A DNA stretch of 64,000 nucleotides, taken from assembly GCA_964035545.1 (NCBI GenBank), contig OZ037765.1, forward strand, positions 34,930,080-34,994,079, given 5' to 3'. Of this stretch, positions 1,517 through 46,200 are shown piece by piece (within the stretch, counting starts at the first letter, position 1; the number at the start of each line of letters is the position of its first letter). The DNA comes from Bugula neritina (taxonomy: Eukaryota > Animalia > Bryozoa). A program made the translations under genes and the position numbers. The notes below the pieces were generated by a model that was not told the origin of the DNA, searched no databases, and was given only the letters and a program-made list of their open reading frames with translations.

Positions 1517-4500
1517 GTTAGTAAATCAATAACTTATACACAGTGTGTCAAATTAGTTCTGTAAGAAGTTAGTAAACACTGAGTGAGTTTCGGTGATAAG
1601 CAAAGTTTTACAGGGATTTAGCAATTAAAGTTTCTGTCATCTTGCAGACCATTGTCTTTAATCTTCAATCTACTCAAAGAATAATATTTATGGTCTTAGA
1701 GAACCTGAGTCTAGGATTATGTTATGCCAAGCCAGTTATTATGTATAAAGTGGTGCACACTCTGTAGGGCTGAGAACATCTTGCTGGCTATTCTCTTGAG
1801 TGAATGTCTATAATATCTCATGTCCAACCAATCAGCTTGCTTATTAGCCGCTTTCGGCCAATCACAAACTGACTTCTATAACTCAGCTTTCATTAGGAGT
1901 TGCGCTACTTTGTGTGAAAATATTACATTCATATATATAAACTAAGATTAAAATATTATAACATGTTTTACTGGCAAGTGGTACTACATATAATCAGTTG
2001 AAATAACAAATGCATTTGAAATGTATTTTGGAGTTATATACTCTCTCTTGTTTACTTAAACACTGTTTATAGTGTTGAGACACTCTGTTATTTTGATGTC
2101 AAAGTTATTATTTATAAAATAATGAATATTTTGTAGAGAAGTACGAGGTGTGGTTCAACACATCCAGTATAGATGGAGCTGATGATAAGTGGATGAAGAA
2201 TAGGACTACATACTACACTGTAGAAGAGATCAAGAATAAAAGTAGACATCATACAGTGACTCATGTTATACTGAAGCATGACATTCCTCCAAATATCAAC
2301 ACACTGTTTCCTCATATCACACATCTAGTGGTATTTGAAGTATACAGCAATGCTGACTGGACCAGGTATGATATTGTGTCTAACACATGCCGTATAAGAG
2401 AAGAAAATGAGAATTTCTTGTCAATAGTGACTATTCATATACTGCTAGCTAGTATTTAGTGACTATTCATACTGCTAGCTAGTATTTAGTGACTATTCAT
2501 ACTGCTAGCTAATATTTAGTGACTATTCATACTACTAGCTAGTATTTAGTGACTATTCATACTGTTAGCTAGTATTTAGTGACTATTCATACTGCTAGCT
2601 AGTATTTAGTGACTATTCATACTGCTAGCTAGTATTTAGTGACTATTCATACTGCTAGCTAGTATTTAGTGACTATTCATACTGCTAGCTAGTATTGAGG
2701 TTATCTTTAGAGTTATATTTGTTTTTATATCTGTATGTTATGTTACAGCATATCTTTACTGAAGAATCTTGAGGTATTGAATATATCAGATAATAACCTA
2801 TCTGAAGGTCTACCTGACAATATATTCACATCCTTACTATCATTGACAGAGTTGAACATGGAGTACTGTGTACTGTTAACTCTACCAAACAGGTGTGTAT
2901 TATATTATAGTGTAGAATGATACTGTAATATATATATATAATATCTCATCAGTAACTAAGCAACTGTCTGCATACATAGCAAAGGTTTCTACAGTTACAC
3001 TCAGGTTGAGGATATTCTGTTGAGACTAGAGCTAAGCAGTCAGCGTGTAGGAATTTAAGCATTTTCCATGATATTTTTTTAATTGCATTTTTGTTGGGTA
3101 GAAGGGATAGGATTTCTACTTGATAGCTTACCATGTGTACAGTACTATTTCCTGTGTACTCCGAAGGGTGGTTTGCCTTCTTCCATCTATAAGTACAACA
3201 TGTAATTGGTTGTTAAATGCAAACAAGTCTGACCGTTCTACCTGTCAGGGGCATGAAGTGAATATCTTTCAACCATTGGCTGGTGAGTAATATATCTGTG
3301 CATAACACAGATGTTGCAGGATTTAATTAACTTAGCCATATCTCTACACAGGGCTGTCCACCAGAAGTGGTGCTGAGCCCTCACTCTACACTCATATACC
3401 CCCTGATGGCCCTTGTGGCACATTTCTAAATATCCTGACCGTATAAAGACTAGGGAATATACACCCTGGACTTGTACATTAGCATATTATTATAAGCTGG
3501 TAAATAATGTAGGACTGTATAAAGTTGTGTTAGCCCACCTGTCAAACTCCTACCAATTTTTGGCTGTGGAAATTCTAATATACTTCTATACTGAAAGGGT
3601 CTGAGTTTGTAGTTTTTAGTCCTGTTTCTAATATTTATTATCATAGCACTCACTCTAGCACTCAATACCAACCATATAGATCTCAGGCAGATTAGAATGT
3701 TGCTGTCCTCACCATGTAACAGATCTTTCATATCTGTATGTTATGTTACAGCATATCTTCACTGAAGAATCTTGAGGTATTGAATATATCAGGGAATAAC
3801 CTATCTGAAGGTCTACCTGACAATATATTCGCATCCTTACTATCATTGAGAAATTTGAACATGAATCAATGTAGACTACCAACTCTACCAAACAGGTGTG
3901 TATTATATTATAGTGTAGAATGATACTGTAATATATATAATATCTCATCAGTAACTCAGCAACTGCATGTCTGCATACATAGCAAAAGTTTCTACAGTTA
4001 CACTCAGGTTGAGGATAATCTGTTGAGACTAGAGCTAAGCTGTCAGCTTGTCAGCATTTAAGCATTTTCCATGATAATTTTTTAATTCTGTGTATTTCCC
4101 GCCTGCTTTTAGCTGTTAGTCATCAATGAAAGTGACTTGCATTTGTGTTGGTTAGAAGGGATAGGATTTCTACTTGATAGCTTACCATCTGTACAGTACT
4201 ACTAATTCCTGTGTACTCTGAAACTAGGATATTTCAGATCAGCTATCAGATTTACAAATTGTTAGTTGCTACAGAATTTGGGGTTTAGAGTTCAGACAAT
4301 AGTTTGTATACAAACACTGCACCCCACGACCCCAAGCTTTGTGCTGCATTCATCAATTCCCATCAGATTTTATCCTATGCAGTTGGTGGTTGTTGAGTGC
4401 TGATTGGCTGATTTGTTCTACTTGTATCAAGTGCTGCAAGCCTGAATGTTTTCTCTTTTACTGGAAGATCATTTATTCAGTTTAAAAAGTTACGATTATA

Positions 4501-7500
4501 TAAACATGAAGGCTGGTTGCCTTCTTCCATGTATAAGTACAACATATAATTGGTGGTGGAATGCAAACAAGTCTGACCCTCCCACCTGTCAGGGGCTTGA
4601 AGTGAATTTTTCAACCAATGGTTGGTGAGTAATAGCTCTGTGCATAACACGGATGTTGCAGGATTTAATTAACTTAGCCATATCTCTATACAGAGCTGGC
4701 CACTAGAAGTGGTGCTGAGCCCTCACTCTATAACATTCATATACCCCCTGATGGCCCTTGTGACACATTTCTAAATATCCTGACTGTATAAAGACTATGG
4801 AATGTACACCCTGGGCTTGTACATTAGCATATTATTATAAGCTGGTAAATAATGTAGGACTGTAGAAAGCTGTGTTAGCCCACCTGTCAAACTGCTACCA
4901 TTTTTTGGTCGTGCAAAATCTAATACTTTGATACTGATAGAGTCTGAGTTTGTAGCTTTTAGTCTCGTTTCTAATATTTATTATCATAGCACTCACTCTA
5001 GCACTCAATACCAACCATATGAAACTCAGGCAGGTTAGAATGTTGCTGTCCTCACCATGTAACAGATCTTTCATATCTGTATGTTATGTTACAGCATATC
5101 TTCACTGGAGAATCTTGAGGTATTGAATATATCAAGGAATAACCTCTCTAAAGGACTACCTGACAATATATTCACATCCTTACTATCATTGAAAGAGTTG
5201 AATATGATGAGGTGTAAACTGTCAACTCTACCAAACAGGTGTGTATTATATTATAGTGTAGAATGGTACAGTAATATATATATATATAATAACTCATCAG
5301 TAACTCAGCAACTGTCTGCATACATAGCAAAGGTTTCTACAGTTACACTCAAGTTGAGGATATTCTGTTGAGACTAGAGCTAAGCTATCAGCATGTCAGC
5401 ATTTAAGCATTTTCCATGATAATTTTTTAATTATACATGTATTTTTACCTGCTTTTAGCATTTAGTCATTTAGGGAGACGAATGGTATTTGTGTTTGTTA
5501 GAAGGGATAGGATTTTTACTTGATAGCTTACCATGTGTACAGTACTAATTCCTGTGTACTCTGAAGCTAGGATATTTCAGATCAGCTATCAGATTTACAA
5601 GTTGTTAGATGTTACAGAATTTGGGGTTCAGAGTTCAGTCAATATAGTTTGTATACAGACACTGCACCCCACGACCCCAAGCTTTGTGCTGCATTCATCA
5701 ATTCCCATTAGATTTTATCCCATGCAGTTGGTGGTTGTTGAGTGCTGATTGGCTGAGTTGTTCCACTTGTATCACGTGCTGCAAGGCCGAATGTTTTCTC
5801 TTTTACTGGGAGTTCATCTATTCAGTTTAAAAAATTACAATTATAAACATGAAGGATGGTTTGCTTTCTTCCATCTATAAGTACAACATATATTTGGTTT
5901 TTGAATGCAAACAAGTCTGACCCTTCTACCTGTCAGGGGCTTGAAGTGAATATCTTTCAACCATTGGTTGGTGAGTAATTTCTCTGTGCATAACACAGAT
6001 GTTGCAGGATTTAATTAACTTAGCCATATCTCTACACAGGACTAGCCACCAAAAATGGTGCTGAGTCCTCACTCTACACTCATGTACCCCCTGATGGCCT
6101 TTGTGACACATTTCTAAATATCCTGACTGTAAAGACTAGGGAATATACACCCTGGACTTGTACATCAGCATATTAAAAGCTGCTAAATAATGCTGGACTG
6201 TATAAAGCTGTGTTAGCCCACCTGTCAAACTGCTACCACTTTTGGTCGTGCAAAGTCTATTACGCGGTCTGAGTTTGTAGTTTTTAGTCTTGTTTCTAAT
6301 GGAACTCAGGCATATTAGAATGTTGTTGCCCTCACCATGTAACAGATATTTCATACCTGTATGTTGTGTTACAGCATGTCTTCACTGAAGACTCTTGAGG
6401 TATTGAATATATCTGAAGGTCTACCTGAAAATATATTCACATCCTTACCATCATTGAAAAGGTTGTATATGATGGACTATAAACTGTCAACTCTACCAAA
6501 CAGGTGTGTATTATATTATAGTGTAGAATGATACTGTGATATATATAATATCTCATCAGTAACTCAGTTGCGTTTATACCTCTGCTGAAAAAATTTCCGA
6601 GTTTCAGTTAATAACCCTTGTCTGGGTACCCCTTTATAGTCAAACTGAAAATCGTTGAATTCATATTGATGCGGAAGCACACTTTCTAAAATTGAAATCT
6701 GACTATTTGATGCCCTTTGTAAATATTCTGACGGTAAAGACTAGGGAATATACACCCTGGACTTGTACATTAGCATATTATTTTAAGCTGGTAAATAATG
6801 TAGGACTGTATAAAGCTGTGTTAGCCAACCTATCAAACTGCTACCATTTTCGGCTGTGCAAATTCTATTACTTTTGTACTGATAGGGTCTGAGTTGGTAG
6901 TTTTTAGTCCCGTTTCTAATATTTATTATCATAGCACTCACTCTAGCACTCCATACTAACCATATGAAAGTCAGGCAGATTAGAATGTTGCTGTCCTCAC
7001 CATGTAACAGATATTTCATACCTGTATGTTATGTTACAGCATGTCTTCCCTGAAGAATCTTGAGGTATTGGATATATCAGGGAATAACCTATCTGAAGGT
7101 CTACCTGACAATATATTCACATCCTTACTATCATTGAGAGAGTTGTACATGAGATACTGTGAACTGTCAACTCTACCAAACAGGTATGTATTATATTATA
7201 GTGTAGAATGATGCTGTAATATATATAATATCTCATCAGTAACTCAGCAACTGTCTGCATACATAGCAAAGGTTACTACAGTTACACTCAGGTTGAGGAT
7301 ATTCTGTCAACATTTAAAATTATTCAAAGTTATTCTATAAAACTCATTTGTTAACTGGCATTTTGTAACTTAACCAGTTCTCGGTCTATGATTTGTCTAT
7401 ACAAGAAACTGCTTTCTTTGTTTATTAGAGTTATCTTCCCTCTAATATAACCAACTTTGTCACTCACACTTCTGTTATGTCATATTGGACCTCTGCAGCT

Positions 7501-10500
7501 CAAACCAAACTGTCACACAACTTATTTAAAGTTTCTCCAAATTCTCATTTACTACTTGACTACTAACTGACTCCGTTAGTTCTCAGTCTATGATTTACCA
7601 GATCTTAGGCTATAGAATGAGTTCATACCTGTATGTTATGTTACAGCATGTCTTCACTGAAGAATCTTGAGGTATTTAATATATCAGGGAATAACCTATC
7701 TGAAGGTCTACCTGACAATATATTCACATCCTTACTATCATTGAGAGAGTTGTACATGGAGAGCTGTAAACTGCCAACTCTACCAAACAGGTGTGTATTA
7801 TATTATAGTGTAGAATGATACTGTAACATATATAGTATCTCATCAGTAACTCAGCAACTGTCTGTATACATAGCAAAGGTTACTACAGTTACCCTCAGGT
7901 TGCGGATATTCTGTTAAGACTAGAGCTAAACTGTCAGCATTTAAGCCATTTTCCATGATAATTTTATATTTCTGTGTATTTTCCGCCTGCTTTTAACTGT
8001 CAGTCATCAATGAAAGCGACTTGCATTTTTGTTGGTTAGAAGGGATAGGATTTCTACTTGATAGCTTACCATGTGTACAGTACTAATCCCTGTGTACTCT
8101 GAAGCTAGGATATTTCAGATCAGCTATCAGATTTACAAGTTGTTAGAAGCTACAGAATTTGGGGTTTAGAGTTCAGACAATAGTTTGTATACAAACACTG
8201 CACCCCACGACCCCAAGCTTTGTGCTGCATTCATCAATTCCCATCAGATTTTATCCCATGCAGTTGTTGGTTGTTGAGTGCTGATTGGCTGAGTTGTTCC
8301 ACTTGCATCACGTGCTGCAAGGCCGAATGTTTTCTCTTTTACTGGAAGTTCATCTATTCAGTTTAAAAAATTACAATTATAAACACGAAAGGTGATTTGC
8401 CTTCTTCCATCTATAAGTACAACGTATAATTGGTTGTTGAATGCAAACAAGTCTAACCCTCCTACCCGTCAGGGGCTTGAAGTGAATATCTTTCAACCAT
8501 TGGTTGGTGAGTAATACCTCTGTGCATAACACAGATGTTGCAGGATTGAATTAACTTAGCCATCTCTCTACACAGGACTAGCCACCAGAAGTGGTGCTGA
8601 GCCCTCACTCTACATTCATGTACCCCCTGATGGCCCTTGTAGCACATATCTAAATATCCTGACTGTAAAGATTAGGAAATGTACACCCTGGACTTGTACA
8701 TTAGCATATTAATATAAGCTGGTAAATAATGTAGGACTATATAAAGCTGTGTTAGCCCACCTGTCAAACCGCTACCATTTTTCGGTCGTGCAAATTCTAG
8801 TGCTTTTTTACTGAAAGGGTCTGAGTTTGTAGTTTTTAGTCTCGTTTCTAATATTTATTATCATAGCACTCACTCTAGCACTCAATACCAACCATATGAA
8901 ACTCAGGCAGGTTAGAATGTTGCTGTCCTCACCATGTAACAGATCTTTCATACCTGTATGTTATGTTACAGCATGTCTTCACTGAAGAATCTTGAGGTAT
9001 TGAATATATCATGGAGTAGACTATCTAAAGGTCTACCTGACACTATATTCATATCCTTACTATCATTGAGAGAGTTGAACATGAGGAACTGTAGACTGCC
9101 AACTCTACCAAACAGGTGTGTATTATATTATAGTGTAGAATAATACTGTAATATATATAGTATCTCATCAGTAACTCAGCAACTGTCTGCATACATAGCA
9201 AAGGTTTCTACAGTTACACTCAATTTGAGGATATTCTGTTGAGACTAGAGCTAAGCTGTCAGTAATTTCTATGACGTCACAGCTGCCATAAGGCTTTGGT
9301 TTACTGGTCATAAAATAATTTAAGCTTCATCAGTTTATATATTTGAATTTTTAAAAAATTGGCTCAAAGTTTGGGTATCTAACAAATTTTATCTAGCAAA
9401 AATAGAAGCAGAATAGGTGGTAGTGAAATTATCATTGGACGTCAACAATGACTCAACCATGATTTTTTACACTTTCATTCAGCTGGTAGAATTGAAAATA
9501 AAATTGTTTTCTTTTATGTTCAAGACAAGACAACTGCATAGAAAGGAGTAGTTTTTTAGTCAATTCCATGGAAGAGTAGTGATTTGCACATTTGACAAAG
9601 TTACGTTAGCAGATTTAACTGAATACTGGTATTCATTTTCACCCTTACTTTTGCAAGTTATGTAGATAATACCAAATCTACTTCTAATTAGTCAAGTATT
9701 AGATACTATCCCCAGCTGCAGGCTAGCTATACAATAACTATTTGCAGTGTGCAGCAATATATATATCATTTGGTATAAACAGAAATGATTAGTAAGGTAT
9801 GATTATTAGATTGTGTAAACAATGCATAGAATATACTGTGATATCTGGTAACAACATTTACCAGATGACAACTAAATATATATTTCTATATCAACAAACC
9901 CTGCCTTTGTTTGAACTCTCTATTATTTGTGATGTTTACCAAAGCAGTTCATTCAAAGGTCAAGGACACATTGTTTAACTATAATATATAACTATTTTAT
10001 AACTTTCTATATTACCCAATAATGTAATGAATATATTTGCAATGTTAACTTCTAGACATTATCATTCAACAAAGAGGGTGCTCTTATTTCTGCATGAAGT
10101 CAAATTTTTGATATAAAAGTTATCATGTGATAGTAAAGATGCTTCAACTTGTACTGACAGTGTATAGTGTTCTGTTTACTAGCATACAGAGTCTACAGAA
10201 GTTAGAGGAGCTGGACATATCAGGTAATACCTTCACGAGTTTACCATCTCCTGTGTGCACACTGAGTAGTCTGCAGAAACTGGATATATCCTTCAACCAC
10301 TCCCTGACATCCTTAAATCCTGAGATACTACAGCTAACTCAACTTCATACACTGTATTTAGATCATTGTAATGCTCTCACATCTCCTCCACTAGAAGTAT
10401 GTAAGAGAGGAGTAGATGATGTGAGACAATACTACACAGACTTGGCTAAAGGTGCTGGTAGAAGTCTTCCATTTGCTACTATAGCTGTACTGGGTAATAT

Positions 10501-13500
10501 GATGGCTGGGAAGACCAGTCTAATCAGAACATTACAGAATGCTGACAGAAAGAGAGTTCTGACCAACAGAGGGCCAGATGCTGTGAGAGATGAGACAACA
10601 AAGGTGTTTAATGTTGAAGAAGTGGAGGTGGATGGTACAGTACTCCGTGTCATCGATATGGGAGGCCAGGAGGTCTACCATATCACCTATCAACTGACAC
10701 TGAGACAGAATTGTATTCCAGTCATAGTAGTCAACATGGAACAGTATGAGGAGATCTCAAGTGATTCAACACACAGAGAAGCTGTTAGAAGATTAGCCTT
10801 TGATTACATGTCTCACCTCTACCTGGCTAACCCAACTCTTGGTGCCCCAAAACTTATCTTCACACATAAAGATAAGTTTCAAAGTGCAGAATTCCAAAAG
10901 CTTCAAAAAAATTTCCTTGGAACTTCAAATCAACTGTGTGAGGAGATGATCAGGGAAGAGAAAGCATTGGGTGGACAATTTGCTCAAATCAAACATTTCA
11001 GTGAATCAACTGAAAGAGTCTTTCTTGATGAGGACATTTATGAGGTGGGGAAAGATGATAGGTATGAAGTGTTTGACCAGATCAAGGAGTCTCTTCTTCA
11101 AACCAGTCAACATTTTGTGAAATCTTTACCTCTGGTTTGGGAGGAAGTGAATGAAAAAGTGCTGTCTATTCCCTCTGTGTACAGCACCTTTGATGAGATA
11201 CTGAAATACTTACAAACCGAACTTCAAACCATTGAGTCAAGTCAGCTGGACATCATCCTCACATACATGCATGACTGTGGCAAAGTCTTGTGGTATAAAG
11301 ATATCAGCTCTCTCCAGCCATACGTATTCCATAAGATTTCACAAGTCACCAAACTTCTCTGTGTTTTGTATCATCATGATCCTAACATATGGCAGAGTAG
11401 AGTTGACAAGTTCCAGCCATATTTTTCAGAGGATGGGATGTCTGTTGAAAAAGAAGACTTTGAGAGATTTGTTAATCATTTCACTGAGACTGGTTTGATG
11501 ATGCAATGCCTTCTCACTCATCTGGTTAAACAAGAAACATCATTTACCAGTCTGGAAGACGTAGAAGTTGCTGTGTGCTTGCTTCGCACATTCCGTCTGT
11601 TATATGGTCCTTTACCTGGTGATTCCAAGGAGCCCTGTTTTATTGTTCCCCAGTTTGCTAACGACTTCTTTGATACCTCTTACTCTTCGCCAAAGAATAT
11701 GCTCCTTCGAGTTGAAACTAAATTCAATGGTCTAGCCCTGCCACACTATGTCTATCAGCAGATGAGTGTTGGTTTGTTGGAGTTGTTTCCAGACGAGTTT
11801 GCTGTGGTTAAAGTGAGAAGAAATGGAGCCAATGTCTATCAAGATGGTATCTACACACAGCTGGTACACGACTTTACATCTAGAAAAGTGTCACTCCACG
11901 TGTCATCTACTGCTGCCAACATCAGCAGAATGTGGGAGAGACTCATCACCACCAACAACAACATCCTCAGACATGTCCTAGAAACTTGGACAGCAAGTAG
12001 ACCAGTCACTACATGCTACTGTGCTCACTGTCTTCTGCTAGGACTTCCTTGTCCTAAGAAGGTGATCAATCCTCCGTGGTGTCTTCGCTCTTTGAAACAT
12101 TCCACACCACGTCCCGGACTGTGTAGTGGATCTTCAACAACTCTGTGTGGTTATGAGGAGATACCGAGTGCTCTTCTCTATCCATGTATGTTTGCATTCA
12201 GTTTGAAGTGAATATCTAGTTTTGCTCGCTTTCATCAGTCTTTCTACTATTTATGTTCTGATAGTAATAAACATATAACTTCCATGTGGTAACTGACAAT
12301 GTTTTATTCTCCAGGCAGCCCTCTTTCTTCAGAAGAAGCTGATAACATAAAAAAACGCGTCACCAAACTGAGATCTGCAAGAGAAGAGACTGCTTCAACT
12401 GTCCCTGGTATGATCAGTTTTCTATCATAAACTGTTACTGTTAGAAGTGACATCCTCTGCCTGAGCTCAGTCATATGTAAACAGCAATAGACAAGAACTC
12501 ATTACACTCAGTTATATAGGACAAAATCACTCAGCTTCAATTATTAAATTTGATCTATATAATTACTGATTAAAAGTGGAAAATATGATTCTGTTCCTTG
12601 TTTACAGTTATTTGGATAATTAGTATCTGTTACTTAGCACTGAACATATCTCCTTTTTTGTTTATTTTAGGAATAGGTGAAGATGATAACCTCAGTGAAT
12701 GCTCTGATGTAGAAGAGGAAGGATATGCTGATTTTACTAAAGATGACCTTGAACCTTTTATATTTATGGTTGATGGCATGCAACTGAAACCTACCAACAG
12801 TGAAAGAGTTAAACAGAAGTTTGACAACTACCAGCAGGTAAAACAAATAATATTGTCTCTGACTATTTCCTAAATCATTGAATATTTTTTCAAAAATATT
12901 GGGTTACATCACATAATTTCTAAAAATGTGATTGTTATTCTATTTATCCACTTTTAGTAAGATAAAATTGATTGGTTTACAGGTTTATGCAATGAGTGAC
13001 CCTGTGAGAGGTCGTGTCATGATCATAAACAATGAGAGATTCTTTAGAGATGATGGCAGTGAATTGACTGAGGCAACCCGAGATGGTTCATACATCGACT
13101 ATGTTAACATCAAAACTCTGTTGAAAGACATGGGATTTGTTGTAGCCAATGAAGATGATCCTCTGTTTGACCTGAGTAAACAGGTTACTGTATCAACCTC
13201 TTATCTTTTTGTGTAGTTCCTTCTCCCTAGGGCCTATAGACTGTCACTAGCTATCAAATACTATCCAGTACAGAGATGTATTGTAGTCCAAGAAGTCTAC
13301 ACCGTGTTTACCATGGTGTTCAAATTAATAGTTTTATAATTTTACAATTATAGTGCGTGGGTTTTATTGTGCGTAGCAGGTATCCTCTTCTAGTTAAGCA
13401 ATCACTCGGGTAGTAGCCGGATAATAGTCTTAATTATTTAACTCAAACACAATACAAAACATCACTCTAAATTACAATACAACAATAGCCATATAATACA

Positions 13501-15056
13501 TGCATTCAATCTGAGTCCTCGCTCACGACAGCCTAACTATACGCGGGAACTCTCACTTGCCAAGAGCCCGCCTTCAAGTCCTTCTCACTGGATGGTTTGC
13601 CGTGACCTTTCCCCTATAAATGTGTCCTTTAGTATTCCCCAAACAGAGGGAAGATAATTATACATTATTATATTATGCAAATCCACCACAATAGTTTTTG
13701 TCAGTGTTGATTTTTAGTTTAGCACTACTTAATATTTTACCTTTGTGATAAATATTTCAATATAACTTTGAAGCAGCTTTGGCTTTGGCGTAGACACATT
13801 TACTTATTCAAACTTGTTTATACACACCATTATATACCTTTATTTTGCCAGGAGATATTATCAGAAGTGATGAAGGAGACCACCCACAAAGACCACAAGG
13901 ATCTTGGCATGTTCATTCTAGTCATCATGTCACACGGAACTTCTGGAAACATCTTCCATGACAGACACTGTAAGCCTGTCAACTTGTCAGAAGTCAAAGA
14001 TCTACTCTCAGCTAGTAAATTTCCTGCCATGAGAGGAAAACCCAAACTCATCATCTTCCATGCCTGTTCTGGCAGTGAGTAGTGCAGAGTTGTTCCTCAT
14101 GTTACTAGAACTAGCAGTTAGATTACATTAATTCATGTAACTGTCTCATCAAAATCCTGCAATCTTTTTGACACTGAATCAATGAATATTTGAATGGGTT
14201 TATTTAAGGTAGGCTCCACCTCAAAACCATGTTTTTTGTACATTTTAGTTTTTTGTTTAACTTGGAATTGATTAGTAGTGCTGGTGGTTTCTCCCCACCT
14301 TATTGCAGAGTACATTATATGTATTTTATATACAGGCAGAGCTGACTTTGGTAATGCTGCACAGTCACAAAGCCTAGACACCGTCTCACCACCAACACCA
14401 ACCCCTCTACCCTCATCTTCTGCAACAGCTGGGAGTGAGTCTTCTGCAGGTCAACATGTGTCTCCAAATATTCACTTTGACAGATTCACTCACCTAGATG
14501 CTGATGACTTCTACATTGTGAAGCCAAGTACAGAAAGTTAGTGAGAAGAAAATTATATTTGAGTCGATTTACGCTTTTACAATTTGAATAAATTAAAATA
14601 TTTGTTGCATGTCAATAAAATTGTTGCAAGTTTTGAATATAAAATAATTTACATAATAATTTGACATTCGTATTTAACTGCTCATTTTCATGTGTTGCAG
14701 CTTACAAGGCTGGTAGGAATGAGAATTATGGTACCTGGTTTATCAGAATACTGGTGGCTACATTCTACAGACACAGCTGTCACAGAGATGTTACTGAGCT
14801 GTTTAGGATAGTAAGTAATTCAGTATTACTCTTTGTATGATACTGTGGAGTGTGTTGAGTCATCAGCTTTATATTTCTCTTATATTTATACTTACAGATA
14901 CAAGACAGAGTTAGACGAGTCAGTATTGCATATTGTAAGAAGACAGGAGATGAAGCAGCTGGTGGTAATGTACCTAATTGTCAGGAATGTACTTTCACTC
15001 ACCTCAGAAAACTTTTCTTTTTTCCAAAGTTCCATGGCAGACAACTCCCACAGTGA
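1264..15056 (+). CDS. Gene A: LRR-ROC-COR-caspase (ROCO-caspase fusion), 1543 aa. Exons 1264-1516, 2137-2365, 2749-2892, 3752-3895, 5095-5238, 6375-6503, 7040-7183, 7647-7790, 8972-9115, 10183-12185, 12315-12407, 12671-12837, 12983-13183, 13852-14074, 14336-14536, 14701-14810, 14898-15056
   Basis: All junctions GT-AG and phase-compatible; summed CDS 4632 nt, open to TGA at 15054-15056. LRR consensus; ROC motifs GNMMAGKTS, DMGGQE, THKD; caspase motifs RGRVMIINN, MSHG, FHACSG, GTWFI, LRKLFFFP. Exon structure mirrored in gene B. Confidence 0.85.
2137..2365 (+). CDS. Gene A exon 2, putative LRR N-cap
   Basis: ttgtag| acceptor, AG|gtatga donor, phase 1 to 2; 229-nt paralog at 34920-35148. Confidence 0.8.
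2427..2697. repeat. 30-bp intronic minisatellite (ctgctagctagtatttagtgactattcata), about 9 copies
   Basis: Tandem units seen directly; same unit expanded at 35310-36305. Confidence 0.95.
2749..2892 (+). CDS. Gene A LRR cassette exon A1 (144 nt, 2 LRRs, phase 2-2)
   Basis: tgttacag|C ATA...CCA AAC AG|gtgtgt; [47 protein letters not shown]. Confidence 0.9.
3752..3895 (+). CDS. Gene A LRR cassette exon A2
   Basis: Same splice signals; ...NISGNN...LRNLNMNQCRLPTLPN. Confidence 0.9.
5095..5238 (+). CDS. Gene A LRR cassette exon A3
   Basis: Same splice signals; ...NISRNN...LKELNMMRCKLSTLPN. Confidence 0.9.
6375..6503 (+). CDS. Gene A LRR cassette exon A4 (129 nt, in-frame 15-nt deletion; absent from the ORF track)
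   Basis: tgttacag|C ATG...AAC AG|gtgtgt; MSSLKTLEVLNIS-----EGLPENIFTSLPSLKRLYMMDYKLSTLPN. Confidence 0.75.
7040..7183 (+). CDS. Gene A LRR cassette exon A5
   Basis: Same splice signals; ...DISGNN...[16 protein letters not shown]. Confidence 0.9.
7647..7790 (+). CDS. Gene A LRR cassette exon A6
   Basis: Same splice signals; ...NISGNN...LRELYMESCKLPTLPN. Confidence 0.9.
8972..9115 (+). CDS. Gene A LRR cassette exon A7
   Basis: Same splice signals; ...NISWSR...LRELNMRNCRLPTLPN. Confidence 0.9.
10183..12185 (+). CDS. Gene A large exon: 3 LRRs + ROC GTPase + COR (MFHAS1-like ROCO core)
   Basis: 2003-nt exon within ORF 10127-12211; P-loop GNMMAGKTS, G3 DMGGQEVY, G4 THKD, COR-like [15 protein letters not shown]-terminal CAHC cysteine cluster. 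Confidence 0.92.
12983..15056 (+). CDS. Gene A caspase (peptidase C14A) domain over 5 exons
   Basis: VYAMSDPVRGRVMIINNERF, TRDGSYID, ILVIMSHG (catalytic His), GKPKLIIFHACSG (catalytic Cys), DADDFYIV, YKAGRNENYGTWFI, TFTHLRKLFFFP. Confidence 0.9.
13354..13690 (-). mobile_element. Solo LTR in a gene A caspase intron
   Basis: TG...CA ends, exact 4-bp TSD ATAG (13350-13353 / 13691-13694), shares cgcgggaactctca with the LTR at 32726-33108. Confidence 0.8.
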
Positions 15057-15989
15057 ATGACGTCTGCAGCACATCACGTGTTCACATGCAGCAGACACAG
15101 ACCTGCCATATTAGCTAGATACTTGCAGCTGCTAGACAGACCTGTCATGTCTTTGATTTTATACAATCATTTCTAATTTTATTAGTTTATATATTTTTCA
15201 TGTACCTGTGATTTAAGAAGAAATGTGAGTTACCACATCCACTTTTTATTCATTTTGCATGCTAAACAACATAACTTCTTTGTGTGTTTTTGCCCATTTG
15301 CTTTCACTGAATTTATAGACACTTTCACATATTATGTGCATAGAAGTTTATTCAGCTGTAAAACCTGATTGAAATCTGTTGAATTAATTTAAACATGTTT
15401 ATGGGGTTTCATGCTTAGCCCCAATTATCTATGTTATTTCTGCACTTTTATCTCATTACCATCTATTCAACATATTATTCTTAGGATGTAGAGAAACCAT
15501 TGCATATGCCTTAGTAAATATAATTGATTTGAAGAATTGTCTCTACTTGAGATTAGATGATTCAGTAACCAGTGAGTAAGCTAAGTAGTAAAGAAGAGCA
15601 AGTGTATCTTTGTTTACTGGTTGCTAAGTGATATACTAGTAGTTGGATTCCATCATGGGAAGGTTGGGGAGGGAATAACTCTAAAATACTCCAAATCTGT
15701 AATATAAGTCATTTAGTCAGTCTGTTAATAGCCATATCACTGAATGAATCTAGAAGTTTCCATAAAGTTGATTGAAGCAGAATAAAGTACGAGTGTATTG
15801 CTAGGATGAGGTGACTTCCCAAGGAGTAGGACTTTAATAAATATATTTTATAAAATTAACTAATTTAATAGAAAACAACAAAGGAGATGAAGCAAATAAT
15901 ATTGAAACAGTAACTTAGCAGTATAATAGTGTATGCAGGCTATATTGTTAGTAGAGTAACTTGACACACAGAACACGGGTGGTCTGCCA

Positions 15990-16244
15990 CTAGTCCCTAG
16001 AGTCACTGTGAATATGAGACAGGGCTAGGAACTTCACATTCTCACACTCTGCTCTGAGACACTCGGCTCTCACCAACTGACTACTCAACTCTCTCTGCTG
16101 CCTACGTAATGTGTCCTTCACCTTCTTATTTATTGTGTCATACTTTTCCACGGCGGTCTTCAACTTTGCAACTCTCTTTTCTTCCTCCAATTCGTACTTC
16201 TTCTTAGACTCTGCTGTCACCGACTCCAATTTATTCACATCCTC
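15990..16244 (-). CDS. Possible terminal exon (or relic) of a convergent coiled-coil protein gene
   Basis: Minus acceptor ctttcaattcag| then 84 heptad-like charged residues EDVNKLESVTAESKKKYELEEEKR... to a stop; candidate upstream donor gtgagt at 16325-16330; rest of gene not found. Confidence 0.35.
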   Translation of the reverse strand, partial: EDVNKLESVTAESKKKYELEEEKRVAKLKTAVEKYDTINKKVKDTLRRQQRELSSQLVRAECLRAECENVKFLALSHIHSDSRD

Positions 16245-22699: not shown

Positions 22700-23306
22700 C
22701 TGAAAGAGTTCAACAGTGTTAGTTACCCTACACTGAAGTACCGCCGGCATTAAGCAGCCTGACAGATTCTCTGTTCAGTTAGACACTCACGAGATCTAGA
22801 CTAATGAATAGTTGGTTGAGAACACACACTACAATTGAGGATCGCTAGGATCTCTAAGTCAGTCTGTGCCCCCACCACTGATTCTCACTAGTTCGTATCT
22901 CCAGCTCGTTTAACTAGCTGAGTTAGAGCTGATTGATGCAATCTAGTTTCCGTACCAGAATAATATAATTAACTCACCCTTTGATCCGGTATAGTAAGAC
23001 ATACTGAATGCTATTGAATGATTATTATTAGTGACTACTGGCATGTCTGCTCTTAACTGCATCAGTGTAAGAAAAGACTGGGCAACATGGTTGCGATGTA
23101 TGACTAGGGCACTGTGCTCCCGGCGGATGAATCTTATTTACGATTCCGTCCGTGTTAAAGTTAGTTTTTCCGTGTTGTCCACGACTCCCATTACTAACCG
23201 GTGGTTTGCCCGCACGGCACCCCGCTGGACTCTCATATCTGCCGCTTTCCACGCAGTCACATATGAAGTCTTTTAAATATGCTGGGGGTTGTCTGGTATG
23301 CTGTCC

Positions 23307-32705: not shown

Positions 32706-32706
32706 A

Positions 32707-32724: not shown

Positions 32725-32725
32725 C

Positions 32726-34241: not shown

Positions 34242-37200
34242 ATGGGTCAACGTAAATCTCTACCTCAGCCTACACCTACACTTAGACATAGTCCTAGACC
34301 TACCCCTGCACCTCGAACTCTACCAACACCTACACCTAGATCTCGACCTCCACCTCCACCTCCACCTCCACCTCCACCTCCACCCCCACTAAGTTAGTAA
34401 ATCAATAACTTATACACAGTGTGTCAAATTAATTCTGTAAGAAGTTAGTAAACACTGAGTGAGTTTCAGTGATAAGGAAAGTTTTACTGGTTGTGTTCAG
34501 TAACCAAAGTTTCTGTCATCTCACAGCTACAGTACATCTTCTGTATATAAAATAGTGAACAGCTTGTGGTGTGAGTTTGTGTTGTAAACAATAATATCTC
34601 ATGTCCAACCAATCAGCTTGCTTATTAGGTGCTTTCAGCCAATCACAAACTGACTTCTATAACTCAGCTTCCATTAGGAGATGCGCTACTTTGTGTGAAA
34701 ATTAGTATTACATTCATCTATATAAACTAAGATTGAAATATTATAACACGTTTTACTGGCAAGTGGTACTATATATAATCAGTTGAAGTTTCAACTGCAT
34801 TTGAAATGTATTTTGGAGTTATAAACTCTCCACGTTTACTTCAATACTGTTTATAGTGTTGAGACACTCTGTTATTTGATGTCAAAGTTATTATTTATAA
34901 AGTGGTGAATATTTTATAGAGGAGTACTGGATGTGGTTCAACACATCCAGTATAGATGGAGCTGATGATAAGTGGATAAAGAATGATACTACATCCTACA
35001 CTATAGAAGAGATCAAGAAGAAAAGTAGACATCACACAGTGACTCATGTTGTACTGAAGCATGACATTCCTCCAAATATCAACACACTGTTTCCTCATCT
35101 CACACATCTAAGGTTATCTGAAGTATACAGCAATGCTGACTGGACCAGGTATGATATTGTGTCTAACACATCCAGTATAAGAGAAAAAACTGAGAATTTT
35201 TTGTTAGTGGTGGAGTTTGAACCTTTACAGTAGTAAATACCCCCCTATCCACTTTACCAGCAGACTATACTTAAATATTAAGTGAATACACACTACACAG
35301 AGTACTCCCACCTATTCACACTGCTAGCTAGTATTTAGTGACTATTCATACTGCTAGCTAGTATTTAGTGACTATTCATACTGTTAGCTAGTATTTAGTG
35401 ACTATTCATACTGCTAACTAGTATTTAGTGACTATTCATACTGCTAGCTAGTATTTAGTGACTATTCATACTGCTAGCTAGTATTTAGTGACTATTCATA
35501 CTGTTAGCTAGTATTTAGTGACTATTCATACTGCTAACTAGTATTTAGTGACTATTCATACTGCTAGCTAGTATTTAGTGACTATTCATACTGCTAGCTA
35601 GTATTTAGTGACTATTCATACTGCTAGCTAGTATTTAGTGACTATTCATACTGCTAGCTAGTATTTAGTGACTATTCATACTGCTAACTAGTATTTAGTG
35701 ACTATTCATACTGCTAGCTAGTATTTAGTGACTATTCATACTGCCAGCTAGTATTTAGTGACTATTCATACTGCCAACTAGTATTTAGTGACTATTCATA
35801 CTGCCAGCTAGTATTTAGTGACTATTCATACTGCCAACTAGTATTTAGTGACTATTCATACTGCTAGCTAGTGTTTAGTGACTATTCATACTGTTAGCTA
35901 GTATTTAGTGACTATTCATACTGCTAGCTAGTATTTAGTGACTATTCATACTGCTAGCTAGTAATTAGTGACTATTCATACTGCTAGCTAGTATTTAGTG
36001 ACTATTCACACTGCTAGCTTGTATTTAATGACTATTCATACTGTTAGCTAGTATTTAGTGACTATTCATACTGATAGCTAGTATTTAGTGACTTTTTTTA
36101 CTGCTAGCTAGTATTTAGTGACTATTCATACTGCTAGCTGGTGTTTAGTGACTATTCATACTGTTAGCTAGTATTTAGTGACTATTCATACTGCTAGCTA
36201 GTATTTAGTGACTATTCATACTGCTAGCTAGTATTTAGTGACTATTCATACTGCTAGCTAGTATTTAGTGACTATTCATACTGCTAGCTAGTATTTAGTG
36301 ACTATGTAAACTGTGAATTCTACCAAACAGGTATGTATTATATTATAGTGTAGAATGATACTGTAATATATAATTATTGTGATAGTTTTGTGGGTTATGA
36401 ATGAAACTAGTGCTTTACATGCTTGTTATGAGAAACAAGGCGAGAAATAAGGTAAAAGGTAAGGTAGCTTTATTGTAGTCCGAATGATCCAGTAGTCTGT
36501 GTCCAGCGAGCTCCAGTAGTAGACTGAATCTACACTGAAACTCGCTGGCTTTTATATACACACAGGACAAAGACACTCCTTTGTTTGCCGAGATCGGAGG
36601 CCCGAAATGCCGAATATCGGCACTTCGGGAATCCGAAATGCCGAATTGGCATCTCGGCACTTCGGTAGTCCGATATGCCGAAAATCGGCATATCGGTGTT
36701 TCGGAGGACCGAAGTGCCGATCTCGGCAACCAAGGACACACACACAACATAAATTTACCACACACACCCCCATCGGAAAGCATGCTTTCTGATAAAGAGA
36801 CGTACACAAACATCAATCACACAAACAGAATATGACACGACAATAAAACACACAGTTGACAAGTAACACACAAAAAAAAACAATATACGGTAGCCATGCA
36901 GTGATACCAAAAAAAAAACAAAGAGAATTGTGCACACATAAAAATAACAGAGCAACGGATAAGTACATAACACTACATGAAAGAATTTACACACACATAA
37001 AAAGAGCAAAGAAAATAAGATCAAGAAAAAAAACAAATATACAAACAGTCTCATCGGCGGTCTCCAGATCGGCCCCGCTACAGGCAGCTCACACGTCTCC
37101 TGAGTTGTCCCAACTCCTCCTCGTACCTGCGGAGCCGCCTGCGTAAGTGTTGTACCTTTTCCTCCAACTGGGCCGATGTCTGGTGTCTGGGGCGGTCGGT

Positions 37201-40200: not shown

Positions 40201-43200
40201 GCTACCGCGCCGGGTAGCGTCTCCTGGAGTCGGCACAGCTCCTTGACGCTCTGGTGCAGAGTGGGGTTGGCGTGGAGCGCCTGGACACCGTCCTGGTGGG
40301 TTTCGGTCCGAAGATGGACGTGCTCCCACCAGTAGACGGTGCCCTCCACTAACTCCGCTTCCACGTCAAGGCGAGCGGGTCCCCCGTTCCGCTGCTCAAT
40401 GTGTAGGCATTGCTTACAGTCCTCTACCGGCCGGCGGCTCATACCGTCGGCGTTCCCATGCTTCCAGCCTGCACGGTGCTCTATCCGGTGAGAGGACTCA
40501 ACAAGAATCTCTAGCCAACGAGCTACTCGGCTCGAGGGCTCTGCACGTTTACACAGCCATATCAGTGATGCATGGTCTGTTCGCAAACGGAACGTTCTCC
40601 CATACAGATATGGTCGAAAGTGCTTGACCGCCTTGACTACTGCTAGGAGTTCCTTCCTAGTGGTGCAGTAGTTCTTCTCGGCGGCCGCGAGAGTCTTGCT
40701 GTAGTAAGCCACGACCACCTCACTTCCACCCTGGACTTGAGACAGGACAGCTTCCACGCTGTGGTCGCTGGCGTCGGTGTCCAGGATGTACTCCTTGGCT
40801 GGATCAGGATACGCCAGAATTGGCGCCTCCATTAGCCGTTGCTTGAGGTGGTCGAATGCCTGCTGCTCCTTCTGCGTCCACTGCCACCGGACCCCCTTTG
40901 CGGTCAGGTTACCCTCCTAGGCCCAGGAATGCACGCAACTCAGGGAGGTCACGGGGGACAGTCCACTCCTTCACAGCCTGTACCTTCTCTGGATCGGTAG
41001 CGACCCCATCACGGCCAACCACATGGCCCAGGTACGTGACTTCCGGCTGCAGGAGTGCACACTTAGAGGGCTTCAGCTTCAGTCCAGCTGCCCGGAGACG
41101 GTCAAAGACCTCCCGCAGATGACTGACATGAGTCGAAAAGTCTGGGGAAATGACAATGACGTTGTCCAGATAGATGAGGAGGGTCTTCCAGTGTAACCCA
41201 CTGAGGACCTGCTCCATGAGCCGTTGGAAAGTTGCCGGGGCGGACGTTAGTCCAAATGGCAGTACTTTCCACTTCCAGAGCCCGTCGCGAGTAATGAATG
41301 CTGCTTTGTCCTGGGCATCAGGACTGAGGGGCACTTGCTAGTACCCGCTAAGCAGATCCAAAGTACTGAAGTACTTGCTACCCGCGAGGGCATCCAGAGA
41401 CTCATCTATCCGTGGGAGAGGGTAGGCGTCCTGGATGGTAACGCTGTTGAGTCTGCGGTAGTCCACGCAGAATCTCCAGCTACCATCCTTCTTCTTGACC
41501 AGGACTACTGGGGAGCTCCACGCACCGTGGGCAGGCTCAATCATATCCCGGTCGAGAAGATCCTGTACCTGTCGGCTCACCTCCTTCTCCTTCTCCAGGC
41601 CTAGACGCCAGGTAGGCTGCCTGATGGGAGTGGTGCCAGTTGCCAGGGGTATCTCGTGGGAGATAACCTTAGTCAGCCCCATGTTTCCATCGCCACAACT
41701 GAAGACATCACTGTACTTCGCGAGTAGTTGAGCCAGTACTTGGCGTTCAGTACTACTCGTACAGTTTCCGCATGCTCCACCATACAAGTTTGACCCTCCT
41801 ATACCTGTCAGAGGCTTGAAGTGAATATCTTTCAACCATTGGTTTGTGAGTAATATCTCTGTGCATAACACGGTTGTTGTAGGATTGAATTATCTTAGCC
41901 ATATCTCTATACGCAGGGCTGGCCACCAAAAGTGGTGCTGAGCCCTCACTCTACACTCATGTACCCCCTGATGGCCCTTGTGACACATTTCTAAATGTCC
42001 TGACCGTATAAAGACTAGGGAATATACACCCCGGATTTGTACATTAGCATATTATTATAAGCTGGTAAATAATGTAGGACTGTATAAAGCCGTGTTAGCC
42101 CACCTGTCAAAGTGCTACCATTTTTGGTTGTGCAAATTCTATTACTTTGATACTGATATGGTCTGAGTTTGTAGTTTTTAGCCTCGTTTCTAATATATAT
42201 TATCATAACACTCACTCTAGCACTCAATACCAACCATATGGAGCTCAGGCAGATTAGAACGTTGCTGTGCTCACCATGTAACAGATCTTTCATACCTGTA
42301 TGTTATGTTACAGCATCTCTTCACTGAAGAATCTTGAGGTATTGGATATATCATGGAATAACCTACCTGAAGGTCTACCTGACAATATATTTACATCCTT
42401 ACTATCATTGAGAAAGTTGTACATGAGGAACTGTAAACTGTCATCTCTACCAAACAGGTGTGTATTATATTATAGTGTAGAATGATACTGTAATATATAT
42501 AATATCTCATCAGTAACTCAGCAACTGTCTGCATACATAGCAAAGGTTTCTACAGTTACACTCAAGTTGAGGATATTCTGTCAATATTTAAAATTATTCA
42601 AAGTTATTCTATAAAACTCATTTGTTAACTGGCATTTTAACTTGAACAGTTCTCAGTCTATAATTTGTCTATAGAAGAAACTGCTTTCTCTGTTTATCAA
42701 AGTTATCTTCCCTCTAATATAACCAACTCTGTCACTCACACTTCTGTTATTTCATATTGGACCTCTGCAGCTCAAACCGAGCTGTCACACAACTTATTTA
42801 AAGTCTCTCCAAATTCTCATTTACTACTTGACTGCTAACTGACTCCGTTAGTTCTCAGTCTATGATTTGCCAAATCCTAGGCTACAGAATGAGTTCATAC
42901 CTGTATGTTATGTTACAGCATTTCTTCACTGAAAAATCTTGAGGTATTGGATATATCAGGGAATAAACTATCCGAAGGTCTACCTGACAATATATTCACA
43001 TCCTTACTATCATTGAGAGTGTTGGACATGAGTTACTGTGAACTGTCAATTCTACCAAACAGGTGTGTATTATATTATAGTGTAAAATGATACTGTAATG
43101 TATATAATATCTCATCAGTAACTCAGCAACTGTCTGCATACATAGCAAAGGTTTCTACAGTTACACTCAGGTTGAGGATATTCTGTTGAGACTAGAGCTA

Positions 43201-46200
43201 AGCTGTCACATTTCTAAATATCCTGACCTTGTAAAGACTAGGGAATATGCACCTCGGACTTGTACATTAGCATATTATTATAAGCTGGTAAATAATGTAG
43301 GACTGTATAAAGCTGTGTTAGCCCACCTGTCAAACTGCTACCATTTTTTGGTCGTGCAAATTCTATTACTTTGATACTGATAGGGTCTGAGTTGGTAGTT
43401 TTTAGTCTCGTTTCTAATATTTCTTATCATAGAGGTTAGTAGTCTCTCTGATAGAACTTACATATGACTCAATGTCACCATTTGATTCCTCACACTGCTT
43501 GCAATGTGGGTAGACCTACTCAGTGTCTCAGCTATGAACATGTCTTTGCCATTTCTTCACCTTTATCAGTGTCCTCCTCTCCCTAGATAATATCTCTTGG
43601 TTCTCACAGTGAATATATATCTCTGTTTCTTGAGCTCACTCTAGCACTCAATACCAACCATATGAAACTCAGGCAGAGTAGAATGTTGCTGTCCTCACCA
43701 TGTAACAGATCTTTCATACCTGTATGTTGTGTTACAGCATATCTTCACTGAAGAATCTTGAGGTATTGGATATATCATTGAATAAGCTATCTGAAGGTCT
43801 CCCGGACAATATATTCACATCCCTACTATCATTGAGAGAGTTATACATGTGGTACTGTGAACTGTCAACTCTACCAAACAGGTGTGTATTATATTATAGT
43901 GTAGAATAATACTGTAATAAATATAATATCTCATCAGTAACTCAGCAACTGTCTGCATACATAGCAAAGGTTTCTACAGTTACACTCAAGTTGAGGATAT
44001 TCTGTTGAGACTAGAGCTAAGCTGTCAGCAATTTCTATGGCATCACAGCTGCCATAAGGCTTTGGTTTACTGGTCATAAAATAATTTAAGCTTTCGTTAG
44101 TTTCTGTATTTGAATTTTTTAAAAATTAGCTCAAAGTTTGGGTATCTAATGAATTTAATCTAGCAAGAAGAGAAGCAGAATAAGTGGTAGTTAAATTATC
44201 ATTGGGCGTCAACACTGACTTAACCATGTTTTTTTACACTTTCATTCAGCTGGTAGAATTGAAAACACAATTGTTTTTTTTTGTTCAAGGCAAGACAACT
44301 TTGCATAGAAAGGAGTAGATTTTTAGTCAATTTCATGGAAGAGTAGTGATTTACACATTTGACAAAGTTATGTTAGCAGATTTAACTAAATACTGGTATT
44401 CATTTCACCCTTACTATTGTAAGTTATGTAGATAATACCAAATCTAATTCTAATTAGTCGAGTATTAGATATACTACCCAGCTGCAGGCTAGGATAGCTA
44501 TACAATAACTATTTGCAGTGTGCAGCTATATGTATGTGGTGTAAACAGAAATGATTATTAAGATATGATTATTAGATTTTGTGAACAATGCATAGAGTAC
44601 TGTGATATCTAGTGACAACATTTACCAGACGACAACAAAATATATAATTTTTATATCAACAAACCCTGCCTTTATTTGAACTCTCTATTTTTTGTGATGT
44701 TTACCAAAGCAGTTCATTCAAAGGTCAAGGATACATTCTTTAACTATAATATATAGTCATTTTATAACTTTCTATATTACCCATTAATGTAATGAATATA
44801 TTTGCAATGTTAACTTCTAGACATTATCACTCAACAAAGAAGGTGCTCTTATTTCTGCATAAAATCAAATTTTTGATATAAAAGTTATCATGTGATAATA
44901 AAGATGCTTCAACTTGTACTGACAGTGTATAGTGTTCTATTTACTAGCATACAGAGTCTACAGAAGTTGGAACAACTGAGCATATCAGATAATAACTTCA
45001 CCAATTTACCATCTCCTGTGTACACACTGAGTAGTCTGCAGAAACTGGATATATCTCATAATGTGTTCCTGACATCCTTAGATCCTGAGATACTACAGCT
45101 AACTCAACTTCATAGACTGAATGTTGATTTTTGTATAGCTCTCACATCTCCTCCACTAGAAATATGTAAGAGAGGAGTGGATGCTGTGAGACAATACTAC
45201 ACAGACTTGGCTAAAGGAGCTGGTAGAAGTCTACCATTTGCTACTATAGCTGTGCTGGGTAATACGATGGCTGGGAAGACCAGTCTAATCAAAACATTAC
45301 AGAATGCTGACAGAAAGAGAGTTCTGACTAACAGAGGGCCAAATGCTGTGAAAGATGAAACAACAAAGGTGTTTAATGTTGAAGAAGTGGAGGTGGACAG
45401 TACAGTACTCCGTGTCATTGATATGGGAGGCCAGGAGGTCTACCATATCACCTATCAACTGACACTGAGACAGAATTGTATTCCAGTCATAGTGGTCAAC
45501 ATGGAACAGTATGAGGAGATTTCAAGTAAATCAACACACAGAGAAGCTGTTAGAAGATTAGCCTTTGATTACATGTCTCACCTCTATCTGGCTAACCCAG
45601 CTCTGGGTGCTCCAAAACTTATCTTCACACATAAAGATAAGTTTCAAAATGGGGAATTTCAGAAGCTCCGAAAGAACTTTCTAGAAACTTCCAATCAGCT
45701 GTGTGAGGAGATGATTAAAGAAGAGAAAGCATTGGGAGGAGAATTTGCTCAAATCAAATATTTCAGTGAATCAACTGAAGGAGTCTTTCATGGTGAGGAC
45801 ATTTATGAGGTGGGGAAAGATGATAAGTATGAAGTGTTTGACCTGATCAAGGAGTGTCTTCTTCGAAGCAGTCAACATTTTGTGAAACCTTTACCTCTGG
45901 TCTGGGAGGAAGTGAATGAAAAAGTGCTGTCTATTCCCTCTGTTTACAGCACCTTTGATGAGATACTGAAATACGTGCAAACAGAACATCAACACATTGA
46001 GTCAAGTCAGCTGGACATAATCCTCACATATATGCATGACTGCGGCAAAGTCTTGTGGTATAAAGATATCAGCTCTCTCCGGCCATACATATTTCACAAA
46101 ATTTCACAAGTCACCAAACTTCTTTGTGTCTTGTATCATCATGATCCTAACATATGGCAGAGTAGAGTTGACAAGTTCCAGCCATACTTTTCAAATGATG

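Follow-up and report, generated by a model that had tools for sequence, protein, structure and literature searches.

The genome of the bryozoan Bugula neritina contains, in a stretch of 64,000 nucleotides (assembly GCA_964035545.1, contig OZ037765.1, positions 34,930,080 to 34,994,079; hereafter the window), ten short exon cassettes coding for leucine-rich repeats (LRRs) whose amino-acid differences are concentrated in a few codons. This locus raises two questions, namely whether selection has diversified those codons and to what kind of protein the cassettes contribute. The cassettes are exons of two tandem paralogous genes, referred to here as A and B, with an apparent LRR-Roc-COR-caspase architecture. 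We consider it probable that both belong to a germline family of such genes in which the LRR arm evolves in concert and selection diversifies eight surface codons per cassette.

Seven cassettes lie at 2749-9115 and three at 42314-43881. Nine of the ten are 144 nt long and the remaining one (6375-6503) is 129 nt long; all are preceded by a pyrimidine tract and AG, followed by GT, and open in phase 1. Their content is two LRRs, repeat A of 25 residues (LxxLxISxNxL...) and repeat B of 23 residues (LxxLxMxxCxL...). The sequence CTACCAAACAG has 11 matches on the + strand of the window, compared to 0.05 expected; ten of these are cassette 3′ ends and the last one, at 36320, is a truncated cassette relic.

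Probable selection at the surface codons of the LRRs

The original prediction, made from the letters of the window, held that hypervariability is focused on the surface residues of the LRRs, and the residues that it listed are exact. The dipeptides before the Cys of repeat B are EY, NQ, MR, MD, RY, ES, RN, RN, SY and WY, the residue after IS is D, G, R, W or L and the strand residue is N, Y or D in the window cassettes; the differences quoted between the LRRs of the large exon, which lies downstream of the cassettes in each gene, are also as described. Among the nine intact cassettes of the window, synonymous diversity (pS) was 0.098 and nonsynonymous diversity (pN) at the concave x sites defined below was 0.272. 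When the eight hypervariable codons identified below were taken together, pN reached 0.391 compared to 0.049 elsewhere.

We extended the analysis to 60 intact cassettes from 17 arrays, a sample that describes diversity among paralogues and not among alleles. All 60 have AG/GT flanks and none contains a stop codon. LRR positions 2, 3, 5, 7 and 8 of each repeat, ten positions altogether, were taken a priori as concave x sites. Over all pairs, pN was 0.267 and pS 0.091 at these sites, compared to 0.050 and 0.053 elsewhere. Counting changes on a tree over the whole exon gave 270 nonsynonymous and 45 synonymous changes, and eight codons passed the Bonferroni threshold against the exon-wide synonymous rate. 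Comparison of site model M2a with M1a gave twice the log-likelihood difference (2ΔlnL) as 348, with 17% of sites, namely A5, A8, A10, B3, B5, B7, B8 and B10, at a nonsynonymous/synonymous rate ratio (omega) of about 20. These eight codons account for 187.5 nonsynonymous versus 6.5 synonymous changes, compared to 82.5 versus 38.5 at the other 39 codons (P = 1.7×10−12, Fisher's test). The signatures formed by the eight residues are distinct in all 60 cassettes and consist mainly of Asn, Glu, Lys, Asp, Tyr, Gly, Ser, Arg and Trp.

Of the eight selected sites, six fall within the ten a-priori concave positions (hypergeometric P = 4.6×10−4), and the other two, A10 and B10, fall just outside the xxLxLxx strand segment. 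The claim that the x positions vary strongly therefore stands for the eight hypervariable codons and has to be withdrawn for A2 (E), A3 (V), A7 (S) and B2 (R), which are conserved. With this amendment, the cassettes display the pattern seen in plant R genes and in the variable lymphocyte receptors (VLRs), in which nonsynonymous exceeds synonymous divergence (dN > dS) at x positions and the framework is conserved.

The three LRRs of the large exon provided a replicate, for which we used 23 paralogous large exons and a tree built from Roc-COR. M2a outperformed M1a by a 2ΔlnL of 256 for the LRR codons, compared to 6.8 for the Roc control. Codons 9, 11, 14, 37, 39, 60 and 61 were selected, and the variable codons (pN 0.25-0.65) are 9, 11, 14 and 16 in one group, 32, 34, 37 and 39 in another, and 55, 56, 58, 60, 61 and 63 in a third, at motif positions matching those of the cassettes. 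The pS of these LRRs, 0.18, has not been homogenized as in the cassettes. In an AlphaFold2 (AF2) model of the large exon, DSSP assigns residues 9-11, 32-34 and 56-58 to strands, so that the sites correspond to positions 3 and 5 of the strand and to positions 7, 8 and 10 after it. We take canonical LRR geometry to put positions 3, 5, 7 and 8 on the concave face and position 10 on its ascending flank. Six of the eight cassette sites are accordingly predicted, by this model-based mapping, to be canonical concave-face x positions, and the two at position 10 to lie on the flank. With decisive site tests in two independent data sets, the proposal of diversifying selection on the putative ligand-binding face of the LRRs is well supported.

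Neutral yardsticks and probable concerted evolution

Two designs were used to set the rate at the x sites (pN_x) against intron divergence. The first consisted of 25 independent pairs of cassettes with similar flanks, a choice that biases intron divergence downward, and gave an intron divergence of 0.092, a pS of 0.046 and a pN_x of 0.217, about 2.4 fold the intron value. Because flank matching lowers intron divergence in this way, we added a cross-validated design in which pairs were picked on one flank and intron divergence was taken on the other. Intron divergence then amounted to 0.154-0.197, pS to 0.042-0.047 and pN_x to 0.21-0.23, corresponding to odds ratios of 1.25-1.48 for pN_x versus intron (P = 3×10−4 to 0.03) and of about 6 for pN_x versus synonymous sites (P < 10−20). 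In the five most recent pairs, pN_x was about 0.11 and intron divergence about 0.03. The x sites thus change about 5-6 times faster than silent sites and at least as fast as introns, confirming hypervariability of the LRR surface codons with amino-acid change above synonymous change and at least equal to intron change.

The flanking introns had also been described as almost invariant. Within the window, this description is true of a stretch extending some 25-30 nt upstream of the cassettes and some 60-90 nt downstream of them, outside which the introns have diverged strongly or do not align; proximal intron diversity among the nine intact cassettes is 0.04-0.06. Genome-wide, intron conservation fades after about 20 nt from the cassette, and the introns become unalignable beyond 20-40 nt. 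As a yardstick, the apparent invariance partly reflects concerted evolution of the exon together with its proximal intron and not a low neutral rate.

Cassettes of one array have a pS of 0.048 and cassettes of different arrays one of 0.060, whereas Roc-COR of the same family has a pS of 0.238, about four times higher, and an omega of 0.28. When nearest relatives were determined separately from the upstream and the downstream flank of a cassette, they agreed in 4 of 43 units and differed in the other 39. The discordant flanks and the low synonymous diversity of the cassettes suggest exon-centered exchange between arrays; framework, silent sites and proximal intron appear to be homogenized across genes, with exchange points near the exons. 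We infer that such concerted evolution caused the low synonymous diversity of the cassettes, and it weakens dS as a clock. Homogenization cannot by itself create the signal at the hypervariable codons, where pN is 0.32-0.34 and pS 0.11-0.12, since each of these codons contains silent as well as replacement sites.

Domain architecture, family and expression

Each large exon matches the Pfam Roc domain, at 30.5 and 33.3 bits in the two genes compared to a cutoff of 27. A P-loop, GN(M/T)MAGKTS, is visible in the Roc part of the large exon, and residues G104, G109, K110 and T111 are invariant among 32 homologues. The Pfam match to COR-A stays below its cutoff (17 versus 35 bits). The AF2 model of the large exon (predicted local distance difference test, pLDDT, 88; predicted template modeling score, pTM, 0.85) retrieved LRRK1, the LRR-Roc-COR structure of CtRoco (6hlu) and LRRK2 in Foldseek searches with E-values of 10−17 to 10−23 and alignments spanning about 670 columns, and it also matches the isolated COR domain 3dpt (TM score by target 0.65). 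On these profile matches and the modeled fold, both genes code for ROCO proteins, with a P-loop-containing Roc GTPase and a COR domain directly C-terminal to it. GTPase-type Pfam matches were limited to Roc, Arf and MMR_HSR1, and the fold matches are ROCO proteins. We considered and rejected identity as NLR proteins, given that the switch is Roc and that the Pfam matches contain neither NACHT nor NB-ARC.

Downstream of the large exon, two exons in each gene match the Pfam caspase family C14. The gene A motifs IMSHG and HACSG align with LLSHG and QACRG of caspase-3, and gene B carries THG and EVCSG, indicating a caspase fold with catalytic His and Cys in both. Among named sequences, the closest relatives are 'MFHAS1 homologues' from Watersipora, also a bryozoan, at 38% identity; one of them, P0045, combines LRR, Roc and a complete caspase domain within one annotated protein. 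From this protein, the adjacency of the exons and their shared strand, LRR-Roc-COR and caspase apparently form a single polypeptide. A loose read end after 12187 matched no downstream sequence of gene A. A search with one cassette against 1.84 billion representative proteins yielded nothing beyond generic LRR giants (40-50% identity); the best alignments of the cassette are to modules of the VLR and LRRTM types (PDB 2o6q, 3e6j and repebodies).

The 216-Mb genome holds at least 199 cassette candidates and at least 94 large-exon candidates, most of them clustered in the 1.2 Mb or so surrounding the window and the others on further contigs. The first 633 codons are open in 28 of the 30 large exons examined. 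A second, more distant large-exon subfamily (78-80% identity, at least ten copies) is clustered at 2.5-6.3 Mb of another contig (C6).

In one public run, contigs cover the cassettes and the large exon and leave the introns uncovered. In an RNA-Seq run, GT..AG joints connect 7183 to 7647 and 7790 to 8972, and a further joint leads from the end of a cassette to 10183. These contigs are short Logan unitigs matched at 93% or more likeness, hence informative for the family and not for a given gene, and the joint sides measure 20-25 nt and are identical among cassettes, such that joints are not assignable to single cassettes. At that level, the reads document transcription of the family and splicing at the predicted borders. 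Table 1 lists the features of both genes.

Table 1. Exons of genes A and B and the cassette relic, in window coordinates.
Feature	Position	Strand	Evidence and remarks
LRR cassette exon 1, gene A	2749..2892	+	AG/GT flanks, open frame; 144 nt, phase 1
LRR cassette exon 2, gene A	3752..3895	+	AG/GT flanks, open frame
LRR cassette exon 3, gene A	5095..5238	+	AG/GT flanks, open frame
LRR cassette exon 4, gene A	6375..6503	+	129 nt, AG/GT flanks, open frame
LRR cassette exon 5, gene A	7040..7183	+	AG/GT flanks; RNA-Seq GT..AG joint 7183 to 7647
LRR cassette exon 6, gene A	7647..7790	+	AG/GT flanks; RNA-Seq GT..AG joint 7790 to 8972
LRR cassette exon 7, gene A	8972..9115	+	AG/GT flanks, open frame; RNA-Seq contigs
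Large exon, gene A: three LRRs, Roc and COR	10183..12185	+	Pfam, exon borders, AF2 model, Foldseek, site test
Caspase (C14) coding exons, gene A	12932-13213, 13723-14079	+	Pfam; catalytic His and Cys present
Relic cassette 3′ end and donor site	36306..36330	+	CTACCAAACAG match
LRR cassette exon 1, gene B	42314..42457	+	AG/GT flanks, open frame
LRR cassette exon 2, gene B	42919..43062	+	AG/GT flanks, open frame
LRR cassette exon 3, gene B	43738..43881	+	AG/GT flanks, open frame
Large exon, gene B: three LRRs, Roc and COR	44948..46950	+	2003 nt, length equal to that of gene A
Caspase (C14) coding exons, gene B	47635-47868, 47988-48290	+	Pfam

The likeness of genes A and B covers the 5′ region (87%), the cassettes and the LRR-Roc-COR exon of 2003 nt, and no nucleotide similarity was detected between their caspase-encoding 3′ parts (12186-16500 in A, 46951-49000 in B). 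Cassette 4 of gene A lacks LRR positions 8-12 of repeat A owing to an in-frame deletion of 15 nt, and has Tyr where repeat B otherwise carries its conserved Cys; frame and splice sites are intact. A 30-bp minisatellite lies directly 5′ of cassette 1 of gene A (2425-2699). Its gene B copy (35312-36313) has grown to about 1 kb and adjoins the relic, which consists of the last 25 nt of a cassette plus the donor and is cut by the minisatellite. The relic was probably the first cassette of gene B, and this exon seems to have been destroyed by minisatellite growth.

Further out, a tandem repeat upstream of gene A (1222-1561) reads as a proline-rich open reading frame (ORF) made of PTPAPRTQPTPPPRPAPR units. 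Long ORFs with retroelement pol/integrase-like sequence occur on the - strand at ~23300-25000, 51200-52700 and 59980-64000, in GC-rich stretches between and after genes A and B. At 53366-55345, about 2 kb of tandem repeats have several open frames on the - strand; the 52-56 kb bin, in which they lie, shows a strong GC skew (0.24).

Competing explanations and known systems

Under the reading that we favor, the cassettes would be ordinary exons that can be spliced in constitutively, and their genes would form a large germline family coding for one-piece LRR-Roc-COR-caspase proteins. Each 144-nt phase-1 exon would add two LRRs to the solenoid, and the exons would have multiplied by tandem duplication. 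The cassettes would be kept alike by gene conversion or unequal crossing-over, acting both inside single genes and from gene to gene, and selection would retain differences at the solvent-exposed concave positions 3, 5, 7 and 8 and at the adjoining position 10, such that each repeat offers a different patch and each gene a different surface, presumably for binding a ligand. Judging from the order of the domains, a ligand on the LRR arm could release or oligomerize the Roc-COR GTPase switch, upon which induced proximity may activate the C-terminal caspase; the protein would then act as sensor and executioner at once, in a cell-autonomous manner. This route of activation is proposed by analogy with NLR inflammasomes and ROCO proteins, and the same analogy, together with the domain order, suggests that the proteins might serve immunity or allorecognition.

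Several points weigh against this reading. The M1a/M2a test was home-made, with one tree and fixed relative branch lengths, and recombination inflates such tests. The class of cassette codons outside the hypervariable ones has an omega of about 1, which is odd for a constrained framework, though it fits young, homogenized variation. The excess of pN_x over intron divergence is modest, 1.2-2.4 times overall; as it is small with unbiased pairs, the claim of faster-than-neutral change leans mainly on synonymous sites, which are themselves depressed. The structural placement comes from three repeats, in which the AF2 strands contain or directly precede the selected sites, and from canonical LRR geometry. 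An uninformative pairwise homoplasy index (PHI) test did not detect recombination within the 144 nt. Regarding expression, the reads support the family and not genes A and B individually, and among the short unitigs no read joins the large exon of gene A to its caspase exons.

Some of these points could be read as relaxed constraint, with x sites drifting freely and omega above 1 arising as an artefact, because gene conversion or constraint related to splicing keeps change at synonymous and framework sites low. Cassette pS (0.05-0.06) is indeed four times lower than Roc-COR pS (0.24), the unbiased pN_x (0.21-0.23) is barely above intron divergence (0.15-0.20), and the proximal intron is conserved too. 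Yet a conversion tract cannot erase silent sites and spare replacement sites in the same codon, as the pN and pS of the hypervariable codons and their 187.5 versus 6.5 changes on the tree would demand. The large-exon LRRs have an undepressed pS of 0.18 and nevertheless reach a pN of 0.44-0.65, with M2a winning by 256, and even the five most recent pairs show a pN_x of about 0.11 against an intron divergence of about 0.03. We therefore regard relaxed constraint as quite unlikely. Targeted hypermutation of the hypervariable codons with no selection is extremely improbable: nonsynonymous changes outnumber synonymous ones about 29 to 1 where site counts predict roughly 4-8 to 1, and the sites follow the periodicity of the protein (5, 7, 8, 10) and recur in the non-homologous repeats of the large exon. 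The one observation in favor of such a hotspot, a synonymous diversity 2-3 times higher in these codons (0.11-0.12 versus 0.04-0.05), is expected from path averaging in codons hit more than once.

A further alternative concerns how the cassettes are used and not how they diverge, with alternative or mutually exclusive splicing as in Dscam and brown-algal ROCO genes, or somatic rearrangement. Only joints between neighbors (5 to 6, 6 to 7, and cassette to large exon) were seen, ambiguous as they are owing to identical ends, and the short unitigs contained no skipping joint with a trustworthy side length. The splice sites are normal and the genes intact, unlike VLR donor cassettes. On the other side stand the phase 1/phase 1 borders and 144-nt length, which allow any subset of cassettes to keep the frame, the unusually conserved proximal intron, and the alternative splicing of brown-algal LRR-ROCO cassette genes (PMC11378527). 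On balance, combinatorial use seems very unlikely, and we return to a germline family of constitutively spliced genes for the comparisons that follow.

The closest published analogue is the LRR-ROCO family of brown algae, in which 72-nt phase-2 exons code for one LRR each and are reported to be shuffled and alternatively spliced, with four sites of the concave face under positive selection (Teng et al. 2024, PMC11378527). According to the account of Zambounis 2012 given there, these families are expanded in Ectocarpus and Saccharina and were proposed to be immune receptors. Tandem LRR exons of the same length and phase, duplication and shuffling of exons, and positive selection at a few positions of the concave face are common to both systems, whereas the bryozoan genes belong to an animal, carry two LRRs per 144-nt phase-1 exon and have a caspase downstream; the likeness is almost certainly convergent. 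The order LRR, Roc GTPase and COR is shared with MFHAS1/MASL1, LRRK1/2 and the Roco protein of Chlorobium tepidum. Compared to these, the bryozoan genes lack kinase, ankyrin and WD40 domains, have a caspase as putative C-terminal effector and form a family that numbers roughly 100 and is hypervariable on its LRR surface. In vertebrates, ROCO genes are conserved and occur as single copies.

Diversified exposed residues of the xxLxLxx segment and clustered, recombining multigene families are also features of plant NLR/R-gene LRRs. The pattern of hypervariability itself is a classical one. Animal NLR inflammasomes share the logic of sensor, NTPase switch and death effector, their output being caspase activation. 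In contrast to NLRs, the bryozoan switch is a predicted Ras-like Roc-COR and not a STAND ATPase of the NACHT or NB-ARC type, and in contrast to inflammasomes the caspase is apparently fused to the sensor and not recruited by CARD or PYD adaptors. Lamprey and hagfish VLRs resemble the cassettes in their LRRV-like module sequence, in variation at strand and post-strand positions and in the presence of hundreds of genomic cassettes. They differ in that the bryozoan cassettes are AG/GT exons of complete genes and are spliced in RNA, with neither an incomplete germline gene nor signs of somatic assembly, and in that the bryozoan proteins are probably cytosolic, whereas VLRs are secreted or glycosylphosphatidylinositol (GPI)-anchored. 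A VLR system was accordingly rejected, as the cassettes have AG/GT flanks, are ordered in complete genes and show exon-exon joints in RNA-Seq contigs.

Our literature search found no description of LRR-Roc-COR-caspase proteins or of the present bryozoan family, and we know of no characterized immune or allorecognition receptor in bryozoans. What is new here is the site-level quantification with its intron controls, the large-exon replicate and the evidence for concerted evolution. An interpretation that goes well beyond these data, and that we consider unlikely, is that the roughly 100 genes constitute a bryozoan-specific immune system that unites sensor, switch and executioner in one piece, a functional counterpart of the inflammasome built on a ROCO GTPase; polymorphism of the cassette arrays would then determine which pathogens are recognized, or whether colonies fuse or reject each other, and frame-neutral skipping might add diversity within an individual.

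In this family of about a hundred genes, which are clustered and recombine, a hypervariable LRR surface is combined with a GTPase switch like that of LRRK2 and MFHAS1 and apparently with a caspase. A framework that evolves in concert, paired with selection on eight codons, makes it a clean model for the evolution of repeats carried on exon cassettes. If the proposed architecture and role are true, the family would represent a third animal route to diversified LRR receptors, after NLRs and VLRs, and would provide a ROCO protein whose output can be read as proteolysis or cell death and that could inform LRR-Roc-COR signaling.

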